64,000 bases of DNA from Vitrella brassicaformis CCMP3155 (lineage: Eukaryota; Protista; Chromerida): assembly GCA_001179505.1 (NCBI GenBank), contig CDMY01000964.1, positions 124,001-188,000 on the forward strand, in the 5' to 3' direction. Under the pieces are notes generated by a model that was given only the letters and a program-made list of their open reading frames with translations, did not search any database and was not told the origin of the DNA. Position 1 is the first letter of the stretch, and the number at the start of each line of letters is the position of its first letter. Positions 2,005 to 64,000 of the stretch are shown here, one piece after another. The position numbers and the translations under genes were made by a program.

Positions 2005-3760
2005 ATGGCCACTTTCCTCCCTCTCTCTCTGCGTGACTATGGCCTCTCCGCAGAGAGCGGTTTTCTCCCCTCCGAGCCTCCCGTGGGCCGTCTCGCCGAC
2101 CCCTATTTCGAAAAGTGGGAGGAGCTCGCCACGGACGTGCCTTCGCGCGTCAAGGACATGGCTCTTTTTCGGGAGCAGATCGAGGGCATGTGTGTGCTGG
2201 ACAGCTCGCGCATAGGGGCGGGGGATGAGTGTTCGCTGCGTCGGGCGTATGTGGTGCTGTCTGTGTTGGGCCATGCCTACGTGTGGGGCGGCGGGGATGA
2301 GGGCGTCCGGGACGTGCTGCCCAAGAGCATTGCGGTGCCATGGTAAGTACGTCAGTGAGTAGAGTGAGGGGAGTGAGGGAATGGCGCACACACACACCGT
2401 TGTTTTAATGCATTTCTCTCTCTCTCTCTGTGTGTGTGGTGTGTTAAGGTGTGCGGTGAGCGATCGGCTGGGAGTGCCGCCCGTGGTGACCCACGCGTCC
2501 ATGGACCTTTGGAACTGGGCACTCATCGACGCCGACGGACCCATGGACATCGAAAACCTCAAGTAGGCACACACACACACACAGACACAGACAGACGACC
2601 GCGCCAAGGACGAAAGGGGACCCGTTGTCTGTCTGTCTGTCTGTCTGTTGGTCAGGTGCCACACGCACTTCACAGGAAGTCGGTCGGAGGAGTGGTTCCA
2701 CCTGATCCCCACCGTCATCGAGCACGCCGGCGCGCCCCTCATCCACCAAACACTCGACCTCGCACACACGCTCAACAAAGCACCCGAGACACCCACACCC
2801 ACACCCCCGCCGCCCAGCCCCACTGCCACCCATCACCTCCCGCCCTCCCCCGCCCTCACCGACGAGCTGCTGCAGTACCTGGGCTGCCTGGCGTCGACCC
2901 TCCGCAGTGTGACATCGCTCATCGGCCGCATGTACGAGGGATGCTGCCGCTTCGAGTTCTACTTCAAGCAGCGGCCCTTTCTCGCCGGCTTCGGCTCGAG
3001 CGAGGCGCTCCCCGACGGCTTGGTCTACGAGGGGGTGTCCAACGAGGCGAGGACATACAAGGGTGCGTCTGCGGGGCAGTCGAGCCTCATCCAGATGCTG
3101 GACGTCATGCTGGGCGTCAACCATGACGACCCCTTCCTCAGTGAGATGCGCGACTACATGCCAGCCCGACACGCGCGGTTCCTCGAGGACCTGCAGCCGG
3201 TCGGAGAGGCCATGCGCGCACTCATCCGTGCCAGTGAGCCGCCAGCCCCCCTCCTCCCCTCCCCCTCCCCCTCCCCCTGCCCCTCTCCCTCTCCCTCCCC
3301 CCTGGTGGACGCCTTCAACGAGTGCATCGACCTGCTGGCGGCGTTTCGGTCGGCGCACATGGGCCTGGTCTACACGTACATCATCCAACTCAAGCGGCAC
3401 CATGCCGCACCACCGACACCGACAGCCGCCCCCACCACCACCACCAGTACCCCCAATACCGAGGAGGCGACTCCAGAGTGGGTGGTGCAGGGGGGGCACC
3501 AGGAGAGGAGCGAGAGCCTCACCGACGTCGGCACCGGCGGCACTGACCTGCTGCCTTTCCTCAAGCAGTGCAAGCAGGAAACCGTCGAGGCCCGCATGGA
3601 GGGTGCGGACGGGCCGCCTTTGCTGACTGCAGAGGATCGGAGTACCAGCAAGGGCAGCGGCATGACACTGCTGATCGTCGAGGAGCAGGACGACGAGCTT
3701 GACAGGGGGGATGGGGACGGGGAGGGGGAGGACACGCCCACATGTGGCGGCAGTGGGTGA
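2005..3760 (+). CDS. IDO: Indoleamine 2,3-dioxygenase family heme protein (3 exons: 2005-2342, 2449-2562, 2656-3760)
   Basis: IDO-family motifs: RRAYVVLSVLGHAYVWG, LGVPPVVTHA..LWNW, FTGSRSEEWF, GASAGQSSLIQMLD, MRDYMP..H..FL, proximal His in FRSAH, GTGGTDLLPFLK. Splice phases are consistent. Confidence 0.93.
2563..2655 (+). repeat. Representative intron with (CA)n/(GACA)n 5' half and (TGTC)n 3' half; pattern recurs across the window
   Basis: gtaggcacacacacacacacagacacagacagac ... ttgtctgtctgtctgtctgtctgttggtcag. Confidence 0.85.
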
Positions 3761-3966
3761 GGGAGGGTCATAACGGGGGAAGGAAGATTGGAGGGAGGGA
3801 GGCATGGGCGGCGGGGGTCTCTGTCTTGTCTGTCTCATCGCGTCATGCTGCCGTGTCGAGTCGTGTCGTGTCGTGTCGCAGTGCTGGTCTTGGAGTGTCT
3901 TGGCTGGCTTCTTTCTCGATAGCTAATATGATCTATATAACAAGCATCATGGCAAGCCGTGGTTTA

Positions 3967-4270
3967 GTCTTCATAGCGCTTCGATGAATGAGGGAGGGAG
4001 GGAGGGAGGGGAGACGGGGACACGACGGCTTTTGGACATGCACGCACAGTGTCATCACAGCACACCCTCTCGCGTCTCACCTTTCCGATCCTGCTGACTG
4101 ACTTGTGAGCCCGTTTTGCCAGTCTTCGTAGCGCTTCAACGAGGGAGGGAGGGAGGGAGGGAGGGAGAATCTTTTTCGCGAGGCGGGATCGCATCGTCCG
4201 CCGTCACAACACACCCGCTCGCGTCTCGCTTTCCCGATTCTCTGCTGTTTTTTTGGGGCCGTTTTGCCTT
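3967..4270. repeat. Imperfect tandem duplication, ~155 bp unit, in the 3' region of IDO
   Basis: Units start gtcttcatagcgcttcgatg (3967) and gtcttcgtagcgcttcaacg (4122). Each has a (GAGG)n tract, cacaccc.ctcgcgtctc.c.tt.ccgat and ccgttttgcc. Confidence 0.7.
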
Positions 4271-5751
4271 GACGACTCAGTGATTGAGTGAATGAGTGTC
4301 GGCCGGCCGGCGTGCCGCTATCTTTTTCGCAGTAGTAGTGGAAGAATGAGGCCTTTTTGTGTCTGTCTGTCTGTCTGTCTGTCGATTTTCCTCGGGGCAC
4401 TGCAGCGGCTGTGGTGAGCCGCGCCGACTGCCTGCCTTTTTGAGCCTGGTTTAGGTAGGTAGGTATGGCCGGGAAAAAGCAGTAGCAACGTGGCAACGTG
4501 CTTCGTGTCTGTGTGTATGTGTGTGTGTGTGTGTGTTGTGGGATGGCAACGGGGGATGGACACACTGGCTGAATTTGCTTGGCTTGCATCATGATGTGTC
4601 CGATCGGCCCTGAGTGTCGACTTTCAAATGACAGACAGGGGGAGGGAGTGGATGGCTGCCTGCCTGCCTGCCTCCCTGCCGGGATTTTGGGCCGTCGACA
4701 CTTTTAGAGGCCGTGCACGGATGGACCGACCGATCGGTGGCTGATGTTGTACATGTGTGTTGATGAGTGAGTGAGTGCGGCTGCTGCTGCTGCTGCTGGT
4801 GATCGAAGTCCCTTGTGGTGGCCAGAGGGGGCGTGCCGTGTTGTCACTGTTTTCGGCTCCAGTGTGTGTGCATACGATGGATGCGTCATCACGGACTGCT
4901 ACGAGATTTTCTGTGCTCGTGTGTTTCCGCTGCCTTTTTCTTCCTCTCCGTCGGTCTGCGTGTGGTTCGGGTATTCCTCCGCCTCGTCGAAGTTGTCTGT
5001 GTTTTGGCTTGTCAGCACGAAGCTCAGATTACTTCGATCGCTGTGGGGGTGGAAGACACGAGGCCACACGACGCGGCCCCACATTGACACGGAGACGGAA
5101 GATGTGTGCATGGAACCGCCGTGTGCGTCAAGACAAGACAGCCTTTCCAGTTCCTCCGCCACTCAGGGTGTGCGCTCTGCCATTGTGTGTTTCTACTTCT
5201 TCTTGAAGCCGTCTGTGTTTCGGGTTGTCCGCACGAAGGCACAGACGGCTTCGGGGAGGTGGAGCAACACACAGAGGCACGACACGCGAAGGGCGATATG
5301 TCCGTCTGTATGTGACCCATTTTGCATCATCGCGCGTGGCATTCGATGGATGGATGGATGGGTGGATGGGTGGTGTGTCGGTGACGGTGTTTCTCCTTCC
5401 GCGTCGGGCTCCCTGAGTTGCATCCCTTTGTGAGCTCATGGACACCGATGCGTGGGCGGGAGCGCACGCGCTGACATGCTGCTGTGTGTGTTGCTGTGCT
5501 GTGTGTGGCTCACTTCACGGAGAAGAAAAGACTTACTGGAATCGAATCAGTGTGTGCATGGGATGTGACGACCACAGAGACGTTTACGCACGGTATGAGG
5601 TCAACAGCTGAGCTGGTTGCGATAATGTATGTCAGTCACTTGAAGCGAAACACATCACTCATGTTAGTCAAGTCTACACACCCCAGCATAGCATCCATCT
5701 GTCTGTCTGTCCATCCATGTGTGTGTGTGTTCCGGCACTCACTCGTTCACT

Positions 5752-8477
5752 TCACTCCCCCGCCTTCGGGTCTAGATCACCCTCAGAGTACCGGGCCTGC
5801 ACAAACGAAGCCAACACCAGAGTCAGCTGCAGGGCGACAGACAGTGGCTCCCTCTTTGTCTCTCTGTCCACCCAGGTACCTCCTCGAAGAACTTGGCCGT
5901 GACCACCCGGCCACCGAAGAACCGACCGTTGAAATTCTGCAACGCTGCACACACACACACACCCCGGAAATGACGACAACGGACAAACCAGTCAAGTCAG
6001 TCAGCCAATCGGCCTGCCTGCCAGGCATGCCGTCTCTGCCTCCTCCTGTGTGTTTTGTGTGGCGGACCGGACTTACCTTTGGTCGCGTTGTCTTTGGTTT
6101 CGTATTCCAAGAAGATGCGCACAGCCTGGTCGTCTGGCAGACCTGACACCTGAGCAGCGCAGCGCAGCACACAAGGGGAGGGAGGGGACAGGACAGCACG
6201 GGGACCCACATTTCATCGGGAGGATGCCTCGCCAACCCCTCTCTCTCAGTCTCTGTGTGTGTGGTGTGTGTGTGTCTATCAATCACATCACAAGAGCACA
6301 TGTACCCATGTACCTCATGGACGCGGCATCGAACGAGGCTGCCGTACTTGGCCCCCTCCTCGGCAGTCTCCTGCTCCAACTCGGCGTCCACCTCACCGGC
6401 ACCAACCAAGTTCTGATCGATAAAACGACAAGACAGACAAGTGACAGACACAGACAGACCCACACGTGTCGTCGATTTCCTCTCTGGTCAGTCACTTGCC
6501 CACCTGCAGCAGCAGGATGCGTGTCGCCGGCCGGCTGGGCTGCGTCGAACGAGGCTGGTCGACCAGACCGGGCCACAGACAGACAGACAGACAGTGGCTG
6601 AATGAGTGGATGGATCTCTCTGATGTGTGTGATGGGTGTGTACCTTCTTTTTGGCGGCCTCTTCAGGCGGCTGTGCGGCGCCCTGCACAATGACGCCGCT
6701 CCGCTTGTCCACCTTTTTCGCCACCAGGGGGGCGACTATCCCCTGCTTCTGACGACCCAGACCTGTTTGTTCATTCAACAGACAGACAGACAGACGCCCA
6801 CCGCACCGACCCACACAATTCACTCACTCACAAGATGCGGGGGTCTTATCTAAGGGACGCTTTGCTTATTTATGTCTGACCTTACCTTGCCCCTCCTTCC
6901 AGCCCATCTTCTCCATCAGCCGAGCAGCAAAGTCTTTCTTCTTCTCTGACATACATACATGTGTCGTGTGTGTGCATCCGCATCGCATCGCACCCACGCG
7001 CCACCACACCGCACAGACAGACATATACACGGACACGCATGACATGAAGCCATGCCGTTCTTGCCACTCCTCTCCTTGCAGACAGACAGACAGACAGACA
7101 GACCCACCTGGCTCCTTCTCGGCCTCTCCCGCCCCCGTCGGCAAATGAGCGCGGCGCTTCCACGCCTCCTCACCCTGATTGATGAGTGAATCGATCACAC
7201 GCACACAGACCATTGAGGCACACATCCAATGCACACGCATCTGAATGGAAATGTGTGTGTGTGCGTACCGAGACGTTGTTCGGGTGGGCAGCTGTCCCGG
7301 CCCGCTCTCGCTCGCGCCTCTGCCGATCCAGCTCTGCACCAAAGGAGAGAGAGGCAGACGGTACGGTGGTGAAATACATGTGGTCGCTGGCTCCACACAT
7401 CCATCCATCCATCGATCTCTCCTTGCTGCCTGCCTGCCTGCCTGGCTGACTCTCCGACCCTTTTGCATCTTCCTCTGCATATCGTCGTGCTTCTTCCGTC
7501 GCTTCCTCTCCCTCAGTATGGCCTCGTAGTTATTCGGCTTGGCCGGGTCTACAAAACCAGTAGTAAGTAGCCGACACAACACAACCCCGCACCGCAACAC
7601 ACACAACAAACGTACTCAAAGTGAACCAACCAACAACTCGACTCGACACCGCTGCCTCTTCCCGCCTGCCGGCCTGCCCTGCCCTGCCCTGCCCCATAAC
7701 ATAAACAGACACGCAGACAGACGTACGTACCGTATTCCTCGTGCACTCGGTGGTCCTCGCGTTTGGTGGCCGTCGGTGCTGCTGCGGCATCTGGGCTGGG
7801 GGTGGGGGAGGGAGGGGACACCTGGGGGGCCTTCTCGATCTCCATCGGGCTGGCGCCACCTGGGTCGTTGGCACCACTCCCATCTGAATGAAACTCACAC
7901 AACCAAACATCCACCACAGATGGGCGAAAGAGGCGAGTGCTGCAGCCAGCCAGTCAGCCAGTTAGTCAGTCAGTCACCGGCGAATGCCGCGAAGGCCGAC
8001 GCAGCGGGTTTGGGCTCGGCATCCTCCTCACGCTTCTGTAACCAACCAACCCCACCCATACGCCAACAACAAGCAAGGGCGAGAGTGAGCGATGAACACA
8101 CGCCGGTCAAGGACATCCATCCGTCGATTCTGACCGACTGACCTGTATGGGTGCTGCCGAGGGTGCTGCGGTAGGCTGTGGCGGCGGCCTCTTCCTCACT
8201 GTGTGTGGCAAAAATAGTTTGGCACGACTGGAGGACCAGGCTGACACACACACACACACCCGTCAGTCAGGCAGACAGACAGACAGGCAAGTGAAAGCGG
8301 GATGAATCGAATCCATCGGTGCTTCAGTGTGTTTCTACCTGTGGCTGCTGCGCCTTCCAGCGGCCTGGTGCCGTCCTTGCCCTCATCGCCGGCGGATTTC
8401 GACGGCGGCAGGTCGCCGTAGAGGGAACTCAGCAACGGCACGCCGGATGAAGCCACGAACTTGCCGCTCTCCGCCAT
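5752..8477 (-). CDS. RBM17: Splicing factor 45 (G-patch + UHM/RRM), multi-exon
   Basis: EEY|DPAKPNNYE motif; G-patch FAARLMEKMGWKEGQ|GLGRQKQGIVAPL; UHM NLVGAGEVDAELEQETAEEGAKYG, AVRIFLEY, NGRFFGGRVVTAKFFEE; stop at 5752. Confidence 0.92.
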
Positions 8478-57428: not shown

Positions 57429-59954
57429 CTATGATTGTGTGGCCACCGGCTGCTTGGTGAACTGTGTGGCGAGTATGTGCATGAGGTCCTTGAGCAGCGT
57501 TGGGTGCCGGTCCAGCTTGCTGAAGCCCTCCGTCTTGGACACAGCACGGTAGTGCTTGGCAGCGAACCGAAGACCTGCACGCCACGGCACGGGAGGGACA
57601 CGCACAGTCGTCTCTCCCGCTACGCCCCTCTCTCTCTCTCTGTGTGTGTGTACATTGTTTCTTGAGGGTTTCTGTGCCGTGTAGCGACGCCTCTATGAGC
57701 AGGTGTGCGACGTTCTGCACAGACAACTCCTGCACCAACGCCTCGCCGCAACGCTCACGCAAACCCTGCAGACACATCGACCCCCACCACCACACACACA
57801 CAGACGACACACGACACACAGAGATACAGAGGAAGCGTGTGTCTTGTGTGTGTGTTTTGTGTGTACGTGTATATTGAATCTATTGGCGGCTTTGAGGATG
57901 TCGACTACGGTGGCGTGGGGGAACGGACTGGCCTCCAACTCCTTGCAACTGACACACATCACCACACATCACCACACCAACACATATCACTCCATCCATC
58001 CACCCCCCATCCCTCTCGCCCTCTCACCTATCGCAGTAGATGTATCTCAGAAGGACTTTGAGGATGTTCGGGCTGACGTCGCTCACAACCAGCCGCTGCT
58101 GCTGCTGGGAAGGCACCTCACCGCCCACACCCACACCAACCTGCCCACCACCACCACCAGCACTGCTAGCAGCAGCAGCTGCTGCTGCTGCAGCAGCCGC
58201 TATGCCCTCAGTTGACGACTGTGAGGTGGATGCCCGCAGCGCCGACAACATGTTGCGAAACACCTGACACACACAGACGGACGGACGGACGGACGGACGG
58301 ACGGATGGATGGATGGACAGGCAGACCTGCCTCTCTGGGTGTGCATTTGCCCCCACACACATACCGTCGATCTGGCGGCGAGAATGCACCGGTGCGCGGG
58401 GATGTCCTCGTTGTTGCAAACCAACACCACATCTGCCACACACACAACACACAACACACCGACAGGCGCAATACATACCAGCCATCCCTCCGCACACACA
58501 CACCCAACTCTCGCTCACCAGAGTGCATGGTGCTTCCCGTGTCGATGAGGCTCCCCAAATCGTTGCCGAGCGCCTTGCCCTGCACGCCGCCGGCCATGTC
58601 GCTACACGCCTTTGCCAGCGCCCTTGGCTCCTCGTGTTCGCTCTGTGGTATGGTGCGCATCTCGCAGTAGATGGTCATGCGGTCGTTGAACAAGACGTCG
58701 TCCAGCTGGTCGGCTGACAGAAACTCAGAGAAGCCACGGTTGGACTCTGCAGATACATGGATGGATGGATGGATGGATGGGGGACAAGGGAGGAGGGAGT
58801 GTGTTGTGTGATGGGGCTTGCCTTTGCCCTCCTGGTGCGAGAACTTGCGAACGCGGGTCTGCATCATGGTCGAGTCAACTGACAATGCACCCACCACACA
58901 GACACACACACAGAGAGAGAGAGATGCATGCATCACCCTATCTACGCCACCCTCCCTCTCCCTCCCTCCCTCTCTCACTCTCATTCTGGTCGTTGTCGAG
59001 GCAGGCGAAGTGAGCACTGGCGACCACCTCCACCTCCTGCGGCGACACCAAATGGCAGAACAGGCTCACCGGCCGCTCCTCGTTGTTGGCCGGAGGCGGT
59101 GGCTGCCCCCCTGCCCCTCCTAGATGCATCAACCAACCAAAACGAAGATATCCCCAATACGAGAGAAGCTTGCTTTGCTTGCCTGCTGCGTTGGCGTCCT
59201 GTCGGTCCTCGCCCGCCGGCCACAGACAGAGGCGCCACCGGCCCGTCATCTGGTCGCTCCCGAAGGGCGGCGAGAACACACGATTGTCGTCTCCAACTGA
59301 CACACACATGACAGACACACGGCAGACAGACAGACAGAGGGACACGTGTATGTGTGTGTGTATGTGTGTGGGGGGGGCGTGGGGGAAACGGGGGAGAGGG
59401 TACTGACTTTGCTCTGCCATTGCTCGCGCCCTGAGGATGCTGCACCGTTGACGTGCGACGAAAAGGGATGGATGGATGGATGGATGGATGGATGTAGGCA
59501 CATAGGCACAAAGGCACATGGGATGCACAGACACACATACTCGTTCGTATACTCACTCACCTGAAGTTGCGGATCTCCCAGGTGTACTTGAGAATGACCT
59601 CCTTGGTCTCCGTCACCTGAACGAAAGAACGAACGAACGCACCAACGCACCAACGCCAAGAATGCATCCACTCCACGTCACGTACGAATGCATGGGGGTG
59701 CGCTGCGCGCGTGTGTGTGTTGTCCCGTGCTGTGGGTGTTTAGCTTACGCAGTCGGTGACCTTCCTCTTCTTGACCGGCGGCACCTCCGTACCTACACAC
59801 CACAAAAGCCAAAGGATTGTCATGCCAAAGGATGGGATGCCATGCATGTGGCCCACCCAGTGGATGCCTGACCTTGGCCCTGCGGTGTGCCGTTGGGCGT
59901 GCCGCCGGCGCTGTTGGTGACGCCCACGCTGCTGATCTCCATGGGAGTGCTCAT
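57429..59954 (-). CDS. MATH-BTB/POZ-BACK protein (SPOP/BPM-like Cullin-3 adaptor)
   Basis: MATH: YTWEIRNF, FSPPF..GRWRLCLWPAG, NRGFSEFLS..L. BTB: DVVLVCNNEDIPAHRCILAARST|VFRNML, VLLRYIYCD, ILKAANRF, LRERCGEAL..LSVQNVAHLL. NLS-like PPVKKRKV near the N-terminus. Confidence 0.9.
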
Positions 59955-60344
59955 CCTTCTGTTCTGTGTCTGCTGGATCTTCCTACGCCTACTGTGCGTG
60001 TAGCTGTGCGCTGTTGTTATTCCCTTCCTCCCAAATGCTATCGATCGAGCCAGCACGCTACACGGACAGGCACACAGCGCGCCGCTGACACACGCACTCA
60101 CTTACCCTCCTCGGAAAACGATGCGAGATCAGGGACAAGCTCGCTTGTTTGTGAGGATTCCCTGAAACCGCTGCTGTGAGGATTCAGCGGGCGCTTTCCG
60201 AGGGCGTGAAGTGGTGTAGGAGGCGAGGCGAAGGCGTTTTCAGCTGTGATCTGCTCACTCATCGACCGCATCTAGACACGCGCTGACCCTCAGTCAGCAA
60301 CACTCTGCAGAAGAAGGAGCCGCAGGCTGACAGACAAGAAAGAA

Positions 60345-63101
60345 ATGGCGAAAGAGGTGCAGACGATGCACCAGTGGATGACAGCGGAGCTGGGCCGCAT
60401 AATCGGTAACACAGACACAGCTCAGACAGAACAGACAGACAGACAGACAGACAGACAGGCAGGCAGACAGACACAGAGAGGGAGGGAGGGAGGCAGACAC
60501 AGAGAGGGAGGGAGGCTGGGCATGAATGCATTAATTCATTGACACGCACAAGAAGCAGACTGAGTGTGCGTCTGTGTGTCGGGACGCCCTGTGGGGTGTA
60601 TGTGTCTGTGTGTTTGTGTCATGGTACCCATGTAATATCATCAGGTGTCGCCGACGAGATGGTGGTAGAGAACGTGGCCACGTACACGAATGAGGCCGAG
60701 CTGCGCGACTTCCTCGAGGCCTTCACAGAGGAGGGACACGCACGCACCGAGATCGCCGCCTTCGTCAAGGAGCTCTTCAGACGGAAGAGAAGGACACCGC
60801 CAGCCGGTCAACAGAACGGGAGTGTGCCTGGTGAGAAGAGAGAGGGAAACAAGAGAGAAGACGTGACGGACGTGAGAATGAATCTTCTCTGTCTGCGTGT
60901 GGATGTATGTGCCCTTGTCAGCCCCGCCACCCCCACCCCCCGCAGCAGCAGCAGCAGCAGCAGCAGAGGGCCCGGTCCCTCCACCATCAGCGCCATCAGT
61001 GCACCAGACGGTAAACTATCCCAGCGGCTTCGTCCCTCCCCCTTCCAAGAAACCCCCGCCAAATGTGCTGCCCTCCGACGACCATGACCACCCCCAGCTG
61101 CCCGTTTCTCCCACAACGCACCCCTCCAAACAGCACAAGAAGGGCAAGAAGATCATGCAGTCCGCTATCGGCCATGACTCATCCGCCATCGCGACAGAGA
61201 GGACACAGAGAAAGGGCAAAGCCGGCGGGGGCGGTGCTGATCAGCAGCGGCTGATGTGCGACTGCCAGGCGCGGGAGCACGAGCTGGTGGGCAACTGTCT
61301 GGCGTGCGGCAAGATCGTGTGTGCGCAGGAGGGGCCGGGTGTGTGTCTGTTTTGTGGGAGGTATGAGGTGCGCGGGAAGGGCCTGGTGGGGAAGTATCTC
61401 ACGACTGGCACTAGTGACGGTGGTGGGGGTGGTGGGGGCGATATGGCGCCTGGCGATGCGGATCTGTATGATGGGCGGAGCGGTGAGGAGAGGGACAAGA
61501 TCGACAAGGCCATCAAACTCAGAGACCAAATCATGGAACAAGGTCCGTGGGGCGGGGCGGTAGGGGGGTGGGATGCACACACATGCAAGATGGTCTGTTT
61601 GTCTCTCTCTCTCTCTCTCTCTGCGTTTCCGTGTGTGTGTCCAGCGCGCAACAAGTCGGTGTTGACAAAAGTGTACGACGACCAGAGTGACTGGTACAGC
61701 GCCGCCAACGACCCATGGCTCACGCGCGAGCAAAGGCTCAAGGCCATACAGAAACAAAAAGAGCTCGAAGACCGAAAACGACAAGAGCAACGTAACCAAC
61801 ACCCCCCTCCCCCCAACACACACACACACACACACACACTTTGTCCCCATGTGTGTCTGCAGGGAGGGTCAACGTCAACTTCGATTTCGCCGGGCGCCGC
61901 ATCACAGAGGCCGACTCCACCATCGAGCAGGACAACAAGGCCGCCCTGGACGCCTTTGACGATGAAGTCCGCCAGCCGCAGTCCTCCTCTGCCAACCAGA
62001 GGATCAAGGCGGTCTACGAGCAGCTTGAGGAGGACCGGCGGCTGTTCATGGAGACGCTGCAGTCGCGGATGAGGGCCTTTAACACTGGCACCTGGGTGGA
62101 GAGGGAGGGGAGGGAGGGGGAGGCGGAGGGGGGGAGGAAAATGAGATATGGGGGAGTCGAGACACGGACCGATGTCGAGGTCAGCAGCTTTAGAATACAC
62201 CTTCAGACGTACACGCACATACTCTCTCTCTGTGTGTGTGTGTGTGTGTGTGTCTGCAGGAGATGCTTGACGAGCTGGACGTTGCACGCCGCGAGAGGGC
62301 AGCAGAGGAGGCAGCAGCGGCAGCGGCAGAGGCAGCAGAAGCAGAGGCAAGACAGCGCCAGCTCGACCAACACCACGAGCAGCAAGAGGCAGAATCCGCC
62401 CTCTCCGCAGCACCACCAAGCCGCTACACAGACGTCACTGACCGGGGCGTGTGTCTGTCGATGCACCAGCCGTGGGCCTCTCTGCTTGTGGCCGGCTTCA
62501 AGCGAGTCGAGGGACGGTCATGGCCCACAGAGCACAGAGGCAGGCTGTGGGTCCACGCCACGGTCAAGGATCCGCTCCCGGCGCTCACAGAGCAGCTGCT
62601 GGCCCACTACAGCGACATGTATGGCGGGAACCACGCCCCATTGCCAAGCAGCTTCCCCACGGGCATGGTGCTTGGGTGTGTCGATCTGGAAGAGTGCATT
62701 ACACAGGTGGGTGGGTCAGTGTAGTGTGTGTTGATGCGGGTCGATGAGTTGGTGTGTGTGTGTTTGTTAGGAAGAGTGGCAGATTCGTTTGGCGGCTGAT
62801 CCTTCTCTGCCGAGGGAGGAGAATGAGAGCGCGTTCCTCTTTGTGTGCAGCAACCCCAGACAGCTGCTCATTCCACATCGCGTAAGTGGGTGGGGTGGTG
62901 GTGGGGCGACCATCCATCCATCCATCCATCCATCCACACATAGACAGACACAGGGCTGTGACGCGTTAATATGTACAGATGTCCGGCGACCACAAGCTAT
63001 GGAAGCTGCCGCAAGACAAGCTCAAGCACCTGCAGAAGGCTCTCAGGCCAGTCAAGTGGCCACCACCCCTCCCACCTTCTGATAATAATGCCCCCACCCC
63101 C
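60345..63101 (+). CDS. TRIP4: Activating signal cointegrator 1 (C2HC5 zinc finger + ASCH domain); no stop before the assembly gap
   Basis: CDCQAREHELVGNCLACGKIVCAQEGPGVCLFCG, VYDDQSDWY, ASCH CLSMHQPWASLLVAGFKRVEGRSWPTEHRGRLWVHA, PTGMVLGCVDL, SAFLFVCSNP, SGDHKLWKL. Confidence 0.95.
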
Positions 63102-63401
63102 NNNNNNNNNNNNNNNNNNNNNNNNNNNNNNNNNNNNNNNNNNNNNNNNNNNNNNNNNNNNNNNNNNNNNNNNNNNNNNNNNNNNNNNNNNNNNNNNNNN
63201 NNNNNNNNNNNNNNNNNNNNNNNNNNNNNNNNNNNNNNNNNNNNNNNNNNNNNNNNNNNNNNNNNNNNNNNNNNNNNNNNNNNNNNNNNNNNNNNNNNNN
63301 NNNNNNNNNNNNNNNNNNNNNNNNNNNNNNNNNNNNNNNNNNNNNNNNNNNNNNNNNNNNNNNNNNNNNNNNNNNNNNNNNNNNNNNNNNNNNNNNNNNN
63401 N
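63102..63401. other. Assembly gap (300 N)
   Basis: Run of n; both flanks are C-rich and encode Pro-rich sequence. Confidence 0.99.
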
Positions 63402-64000
63402 ACCCCCTCCCCGCCCACACACAACGGCCTCACCACAGAGATGGCCCAGAACGGCCCACACGAGCCAGATGACGCATCGCCACGAGAGAGGGAGAGGCGG
63501 GGCGGTCGTCTGCAGCTGGTCAAGGAGCCATTTGAGCGGGTTGCCGTCGGTTTTGACCTCTGGCCGACGGGTGAAGGTGCTGAGGATGGTAGTGGTAGTG
63601 GGGGTGGCGGAGGTGAGAAGCGGATGGTGCAGGTGGGCAAGACCAAGTTCGCCAAAGGCGACACCGATGACGGGGTACGTCAGGGCACGCCACACACACC
63701 CGAACACGCACACACGAACCCAGTGCGTGTCCATCATATGTGTGTGCATGCTGCAGCTAGTCGTGTTGCGTGACGGGATGGTGCTGCTTCGCGAGTACAT
63801 GGACCTCCCCACTCAGCAGAGGATCATTGACACGGTGCGGGAGATGGGCGTCGGCAAGGGCGGCTTCTACACACCCACTTACGAGGCCAAGAAGCAGGGC
63901 GACCAAAAGGTCTGTCGACCCTTCCCCCCGAACACCCGCAGCCACCCACATACCCCTTTCTCTCTCCGCGTGTGTGCAGTCGTCATTACACTTGCGGATG
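63402..64000 (+). CDS. AlkB-family 2OG-Fe(II) dioxygenase N-terminal part, runs off the window; possibly the C-terminus of TRIP4
   Basis: Exon 63757-63909 LVVLRDGMVLLREYMDLPTQQRIIDTVREMGVGKGGFYTPTY and 63980-64000 SSLHLRM match the plant ALKBH1-like pattern LRPGMVLLK.YL...Q..IV...R.LG.G.GGFYQPGY....LHL.MM. The catalytic HxD..H is outside the window. Confidence 0.75.

Follow-up and report, generated by a model that had tools for sequence, protein, structure and literature searches.

Vitrella brassicaformis CCMP3155 carries, near the right-hand end of the window (the whole 64,000-nucleotide stretch analysed, G000:C964:124001-188000), a spliced gene of the TRIP4/ASC-1 family followed on the same strand by the exons of an AlkB-type dioxygenase, with a run of unread bases lying between the two. 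These parts probably belong to a single fused TRIP4-AlkB gene with the gap inside its Pro-rich linker, where continuity through the gap itself is something that we infer. Such a gene would have at least 13 exons and its product at least about 970 residues, with the order N-terminal region, C2HC5 zinc finger, TRIP4 third domain, ASCH domain, Pro-rich/acidic linker and AlkB Fe(II)/2-oxoglutarate dioxygenase. The locus was searched exon by exon, the assembly searched comprising 72.7 Mb in 1064 contigs, and the sequence running on downstream was labelled L003 (L003 position equals window position minus 60000). From left to right the features are:

60345-60405, + strand: TRIP4-like exon 1, N-terminal region with ATG 60345 (open reading frame (ORF), donor g/gtaaca; RNA joint L003 404 to 644 in run X7)
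60645-60830, + strand: TRIP4-like exon 2 (RNA contig of run X7 over L003 644-830, its loose end at 830 equalling the start of exon 3)
60922-61542, + strand: TRIP4-like exon 3, Pro/Ala-rich tract and zf-C2HC5 (Pfam PF06221; RNA contig of X7)
61645-61791, + strand: TRIP4-like exon 4, TRIP4 third domain (Pfam PF23134)
61863-62095, + strand: TRIP4-like exon 5 (RNA contig of X7 over L003 1863-2092; donor 62095/62096 placed from frame and GT)
62260-62706, + strand: TRIP4-like exon 6, acidic/Ala-rich linker and first half of ASCH (Pfam PF04266; RNA joint L003 2704 to 2769)
62771-62881, + strand: TRIP4-like exon 7, middle of ASCH (RNA joints L003 2704 to 2769 and 2881 to 2979)
62979-63101, + strand: left part of exon 8, last ASCH strand MSGDHKLWKL, conserved ALRPVKWP tail and Pro-rich tract (RNA contig to 63069)
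63102-63401, no strand: assembly gap, probably a C-rich, Pro-coding low-complexity tract (both flanks C-rich)
63402-63674, + strand: right part of the linker exon, with ATG 63441 and the motif FDLWPTGEG (exonic from 63402 in an RNA contig of X7)
63757-63909, + strand: AlkB exon with N-terminal strands LVVLRDGMVLL...QQRIID...GGFY (RNA joints L003 3673 to 3756 and 3907 to 3978 in X1 and X7)
63980-64000 in the window and on to L003 4149, + strand: next AlkB exon (RNA joint L003 4147 to 4209)
L003 4211-4359, + strand: AlkB exon with LHQD (Pfam PF13532; RNA joints 4147 to 4209 and 4358 to 4426)
L003 4427-4671, + strand: last AlkB exon with YHAV, RLNVTLR and the stop TGA (Pfam PF13532; RNA joint 4358 to 4426)

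The TRIP4/ASC-1 gene opens at ATG 60345 and carries zf-C2HC5, TRIP4_3rd and ASCH in the order of human TRIP4. The zinc finger was recognised on 61197-61544 with an expect value (E) of 1.2e-12 and 48.1 bits (cut-off 25.8 bits) and the third domain on 61647-61790 with E 1.1e-6 and 29.4 bits (cut-off 27.7 bits). For ASCH, exon 6 gave E 4.8e-9 over profile positions 1-54, with the remainder of the domain recognised by alignment to the TRIP4 homologues P0002 and P0035 (see below). In a profile search of the whole genome this gene was the single zf-C2HC5 locus. The succession of C2HC5, TRIP4 third domain and C-terminal ASCH is shared with human TRIP4 (ASC-1) and yeast Rqt4, the corresponding subunits of the activating signal cointegrator complex (ASCC) or the RQT (trigger of ribosome quality control) complex; canonical TRIP4 ends soon past the last ASCH strand, whereas the frame here remains open beyond that point and, in the most likely reading, leads on into AlkB. 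The same TRIP4 gene is also present on ENA contig k147_3867159 of ERZ893784 (L004), aligned to window 59194-62915 at 83-89% nucleotide identity, which suggests that the source organism has a close relative not yet in culture. The contig breaks off in the CCAT microsatellite within the intron that precedes the last TRIP4 exon and is of no help on the gap.

On the other side of the gap the 2OG-FeII_Oxy_2 domain (PF13532) was matched by the last exon alone with E 4.9e-18 and 66.5 bits (cut-off 31.2 bits) and by the exon before last with E 3.2e-6 and 27.9 bits, with NCBIfam AlkB models giving partial matches. The original prediction, made from the window alone, had placed the catalytic residues beyond the window end and proposed a search downstream for HxD..H..RxxxxxR, and all of these motifs lie just past that end, so that the prediction is not refuted on this count. 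The iron triad HxD...H is formed by LHQD and YHAV, which aligned with their counterparts in E. coli AlkB and in the rice structure 5XEG, while the 2-oxoglutarate motif RxxxxxR is the C-terminal RLNVTLR, aligned with RLNLTFR of 5XEG. Judged by these alignments, the AlkB enzyme here is intact in its catalytic residues (H-x-D, H and R-x5-R). Among solved structures, rice OsALKBH1 (PDB 5XEG) is by far the best relative of the AlkB part, with E 8e-13 for one exon compared to about 1e-9 for E. coli AlkB; both share the 2OG-FeII_Oxy_2 signature, HxD...H and RxxxxxR with the copy here, but in their solved form consist of the catalytic domain standing alone. The genome holds at least three other loci of the AlkB type (PF13532), at G000:C343:20601-21164, C385:363390-364170 and C862:6751-7134.

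Between the two parts lies a run of 300 N (63102-63401) whose length is nominal, as the original prediction had cautioned. The reading on its left, in which the ASCH domain ends (SGDHKLWKL...PVKWPPPLPP) and the frame enters the gap without a stop, was borne out, with exon 62979-63101 entering in phase 0 and no stop before it; the translation runs MSGDHKLWKL...RPVKWPPPLPPSDNNAPTP (full reading MSGDHKLWKLPQDKLKHLQKALRPVKWPPPLPPSDNNAPTP). To the right, the sequence starting at 63402 (TPSPPTHNGLTTEMAQNG...) reads open in the same frame as ATG 63441, and the linker exon joins in phase 0 to LVVLRDGMVLLREY... at 63757. The in-phase splice proposed to follow the gap is right in its phase and acceptor, with the donor lying after 63674 (GG/gtacgt) and not after 63686 (RNA joint L003 3673 to 3756, cut +1). 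Because the gap length is nominal, the apparent continuity of frame over the gap is uninformative, such that in-frame passage over 300 N (100 codons) means nothing. From the right, the Logan DNA contig L005 extends 11 nucleotides (tccctcccccc) into the gap, reading PPP in frame. No RNA or DNA contig bridging the gap was found among the contigs of four runs placed on the locus, and an exact look-up of a 56-amino-acid ORF returned two Logan contigs only, neither spanning the gap. No second copy of either flank was found in the assembly and, since each flank is unique there, no stray contig carries the gap sequence. A spurious gap was considered and rejected, as by eye the left tail and the right head do not overlap.

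Transcripts support both sides of the locus. GT..AG joints in contigs of three runs (X1, X2 and X7) mark these as containing spliced RNA, with none in the DNA run X3, and the RNA joints confirm all four AlkB introns together with three TRIP4 introns. The TRIP4 RNA contig (702 nucleotides) crosses the last intron and stops at 63069, with no stop codon or poly(A) past the ASCH end, and the AlkB RNA contig (1744 nucleotides) begins 4 nucleotides left of 63402, inside the gap. Both gap flanks are exonic in these spliced contigs. DNA and RNA contigs break at nearly the same place, and the break is therefore most simply put down to a low-complexity C-rich tract rather than to the end of a transcript. 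Elsewhere at the locus, microsatellites of the (CAGA)n/(GACA)n and (CCAT)n types occur in introns and intergenic DNA where short-read contigs break (window 60420-60500 and 62900-62935; L003 6300-6330, 6480-6500 and 7880-7960).

The same arrangement was sought in other organisms by a profile-free search of 1.84 billion representatives, with a query in which X took the place of the gap between the flanks, and this gave two proteins (P0030 and P0031). P0030 is a protein of 337 amino acids from Tara Oceans metagenome contigs that starts MSGEHKLWTIPKDKLKSFQHALRPAAWP. The last TRIP4 exon here is 66% identical to residues 1-32 of P0030, which then runs stop-free through an acidic/Pro linker to an AlkB domain that is complete (Pfam E 2e-33) and includes the motifs HQD, H and RxxxxxR. 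At the Tara loci (L007, L008 and L010), exemplified by the 1995-nucleotide contig L010, the exon preceding the AlkB exon holds the ASCH domain and is 44% identical to the ASCH exon here. The intervening intron has 46% GC and in-frame stops, with its acceptor at the identical codon position (cag/ATG AGC GGG compared to cag/ATG TCC GGC here). The final exon spans 1014 nucleotides at 67% GC and leads from MSGEHKLW, the last ASCH strand, through the linker and the full AlkB domain to the stop; in frame it has only this terminal stop, with 8 and 4 stops in the other two frames. As the last ASCH strand and the whole of AlkB share one exon, the Tara fusion is independent of the choice of gene model.

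The match to the locus here extends along the protein, with AlkB exon 63757-63909 aligned to P0030 residues 108-145 and the linker at 63402-63674 weakly aligned to residues 28-92, including a shared (D/E)LWPxGEG motif (DLELWPEG in the Tara protein). P0030 matches only this locus in the genome, with none of the three further AlkB-type loci resembling the Tara fused protein, and its own best solved relative is again 5XEG (E 1.4e-37). The Tara gene (P0030/P0033) and the one here have in common the position of the intron before MSG[DE]HKLW, the ALRP..WP tail, the acidic/Pro linker with (D/E)LWPxG and the full AlkB motifs. They differ in that the ASCH end, linker and AlkB of the Tara gene form one exon whereas five or more exons are used here, and in that the Tara linker has about 80 amino acids compared to at least 108 plus the gap.

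The second protein, P0031, is a 791-codon unbroken genomic ORF of assembly GCA_014466275.1 that passes from zinc finger to ASCH, linker and the first AlkB strands (FIHLHD...QQQIIDYL...GGFF...CRMSLG). Its linker of 104 codons had a chance of 0.012 of staying open as judged by shuffling. P0035, a cluster mate of P0031, is the annotated Amoebophrya sp. A120 protein CAD7950463.1 of 1165 amino acids, in which zf-C2HC5, TRIP4_3rd, ASCH and 2OG-FeII_Oxy_2 follow one another in the same four-domain order as here, the difference being long Ser/Thr/Asn-rich inserts. Exon 6 is 46% identical to P0035 residues 491-595, exon 7 matches residues 657-676 and the left part of exon 8 is 75% identical to residues 679-706, such that in piecewise BLASTP the parts of the locus are colinear with both P0030 and P0035.

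A related joining is seen in plants. The ESM Atlas structural neighbours of P0030 include a cluster of 54 proteins, mostly from Streptophyta and of about 626 amino acids, with 2OG-FeII_Oxy_2 in 100%, TRIP4_3rd in 96% and zf-C2HC5 in 56%. Ginkgo GbALKBH1B was listed in passing with zf-C2HC5 in a 2026 survey (PMC13296198). The plant proteins resemble the gene here in having TRIP4 N-terminal modules joined to an ALKBH1-type AlkB, but ASCH is not among the common Pfam families of the ESM Atlas cluster and appears to be missing or replaced. By domain content, TRIP4 modules and ALKBH1-type AlkB are joined in at least two large eukaryotic groups. Other searches gave less. A second Atlas query (Amoebophrya residues 480-1165) produced sub-threshold leads only, and a scan of Joint Genome Institute (JGI) metagenomes with P0030 returned only a bacterial stand-alone AlkB (L011). 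Neither the right flank nor the X-bridged ORF matched anything in word searches, which is uninformative as the libraries lacked the source organism's own proteins.

Because the same two parts form one continuous gene in two other related protists, a single fused gene is the most likely reading here. The TRIP4-AlkB architecture as such is strongly supported by these comparisons, being fused in two other myzozoan lineages. Of the fusion originally predicted, therefore, the architecture stands, as it is contiguous in the Tara gene and in Amoebophrya, with the locus here colinear with both and the sole match in the genome, while continuity through the gap at this locus is a step that we infer. Several observations weigh against this reading. 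A 388-codon ORF in a second, non-coding frame of the + strand (window 62971-64137, L003 2971-4137) likewise runs open over the gap, several exons and introns, which makes the openness of the flanks a weak sign of coding in a genome so rich in GC. The unread gap could contain a new promoter as well as a stop codon and a poly(A) site. The ATG at 63441, 39 nucleotides right of the gap, is a possible start of a separate AlkB protein, which would then bear an N-terminal extension of about 78 amino acids. Finally, an unfused TRIP4 (P0002/L012, ENA ERZ23489310 scaffold_1469, 2387-4419) with a similar C-terminal tail is found in another uncultured eukaryote, made up of a zf-C2HC5 ORF and an ASCH ORF with a stop 51 amino acids past KLWKM and an opposite-strand gene directly after. 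This shows that fused and unfused forms of TRIP4 coexist among protists, and that fission or a lack of fusion does happen.

Three other explanations were weighed against a single fused gene. The first, which we consider doubtful, is that both forms exist, with a fused mRNA accompanied by a second, shorter one that encodes AlkB alone and begins at an internal site within or close to the gap. Possible starts are available at ATG 63441 and at a conserved Met further on (KRMVQ here and GRMVA in the Tara protein), and word depth was higher in AlkB-part contigs than in TRIP4-part contigs in all three RNA runs. Depth is, however, one figure per contig and cannot rank the parts of a gene, and its steady rise to the 3′ end in X1 and X2 fits a simple 3′ bias; on the same grounds, the higher AlkB depth was set aside as evidence for two transcripts.

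Two tandem genes, in which TRIP4 would end in the gap and AlkB would be expressed from its own promoter and ATG 63441, either through fission or as neighbours that were never fused, are unlikely. Such an arrangement would be in keeping with the existence of that ATG and with the linker exon 63402-63674, in which no Pfam domain was found, including the 78 residues following ATG 63441. It would also agree with the lack of a contig bridging the gap, with the unfused TRIP4 of other protists and with the ending of canonical TRIP4 shortly past the KLWKL strand, as in human TRIP4. Against this, a nominally 300-nucleotide gap would have to fit a stop, a 3′ untranslated region (UTR), a promoter and a 5′ UTR when the UTRs seen at the locus measure at least about 130-190 nucleotides, and the TRIP4 RNA contig continues past the ASCH end to 63069 with neither stop nor poly(A). 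What follows ATG 63441, moreover, corresponds in alignment to the linker inside the Tara fused protein and shares DLWPxGEG with it, and the orthologues are fused in two other myzozoan lineages. That the gap sides are not true chromosomal neighbours but were misjoined in scaffolding is highly improbable. Gaps are indeed sites of possible misjoin, and the sequence on either side is C-rich and of low complexity, but each flank occurs only once in the assembly, and it would take an extraordinary coincidence for a misjoin to give the same strand, the same order and colinearity with the fused orthologues.

Past the AlkB stop, and convergent with AlkB, lie two similar minus-strand genes (L003 5214-5828 and about 7600-7850) with hydrophobic, Cys-rich ORFs, 1.2-3.9 kb beyond the window end.

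For a single fused TRIP4-AlkB gene, a function can be proposed by analogy with the systems to which its parts belong, and the coupling of stalled-ribosome sensing to demethylation put forward in the original prediction is likewise a proposal drawn from human and yeast ASCC/RQT biology. TRIP4, ASCC3 and ASCC2 reportedly make up the RQT complex that splits collided ribosomes. E. coli AlkB removes 1-methyladenine (m1A) and 3-methylcytosine (m3C). Human TRIP4 docks on ASCC3 by its zinc finger and stimulates unwinding, with ASCH at the DNA exit of ASCC3 beside its C-terminal helicase cassette, while ALKBH3 obtains its single-stranded substrate through ASCC3 (PMC10076317). OsALKBH1 has been reported as an N6-methyladenine (N6-mA) demethylase (PMC8118384). 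By analogy, the likely function of the fused protein is the tethering of an AlkB demethylase to the ASCC3/RQT helicase via TRIP4. The zinc finger would dock the protein on an ASCC3/Slh1-type dual-cassette helicase, as in human TRIP4, thereby placing ASCH at the helicase exit, and AlkB, hanging from the ASCH C-terminus, would meet the single strand leaving the helicase, whether mRNA of a collided ribosome or unwound DNA. There the predicted activity would be the oxidative removal of methyl lesions or marks of the m1A/m3C type, possibly also N6-mA, such that the fusion would make dealkylation of the emerging mRNA or DNA a fixed part of what the TRIP4-bound helicase does. A pair of Sec63 domains was found at two loci of the genome, which fits Brr2 plus an ASCC3-like helicase.

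The proposed coupling also has points against it. In human cells, TRIP4 competes for ASCC3 with ALKBH3, an AlkB homologue encoded as a protein of its own, the two binding in a mutually exclusive manner, and knockout of TRIP4 does not sensitise cells to methyl methanesulfonate (MMS), with TRIP4 acting in ribosome quality control and transcription and ALKBH3 in alkylation repair (PMC10076317). Given the mutually exclusive binding and the lack of MMS sensitisation, functional coupling is not a given. In addition, the AlkB domain of P0035 (residues about 1030-1060) lacks the His of HxD and has Lys as the second Arg of RxxxxxR, such that the Amoebophrya domain may be catalytically dead and serve for binding only; the copy here, unlike the Amoebophrya protein, keeps all catalytic AlkB residues. 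The loss of HxD in Amoebophrya therefore cautions against taking activity as the selected feature.

Both protein families are well known, and fused proteins are already present, unnamed, in public databases. In the literature no paper describing or interpreting a TRIP4/ASCH-AlkB fusion was found, the nearest being the passing domain listing of Ginkgo ALKBH1B. For annotation, the locus is probably a single gene model split in two by the assembly gap. More broadly, and only tentatively, TRIP4-AlkB may be an old and recurrent covalent module, with ASCH in Myzozoa and apparently without it in plants, and in these organisms a demethylase would be built into the sole TRIP4 subunit of the ASCC/RQT complex. 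Conservation of the fusion spans chromerid-like and syndinian lineages, plants show an echo of it, and no TRIP4 gene other than the one concerned is present in the genome here. As a natural fusion it offers independent evolutionary evidence that a TRIP4-bound helicase complex can work with an AlkB demethylase, and it provides a ready-made system for asking whether the rescue of collided ribosomes is coupled to mRNA dealkylation. If the proposal is true, the fusion would resolve the mutually exclusive binding of TRIP4 and ALKBH3 seen at human ASCC3, and each collision or unwinding event at the ASCC/RQT complex would go together with direct dealkylation of the strand extruded there, be it mRNA or DNA.

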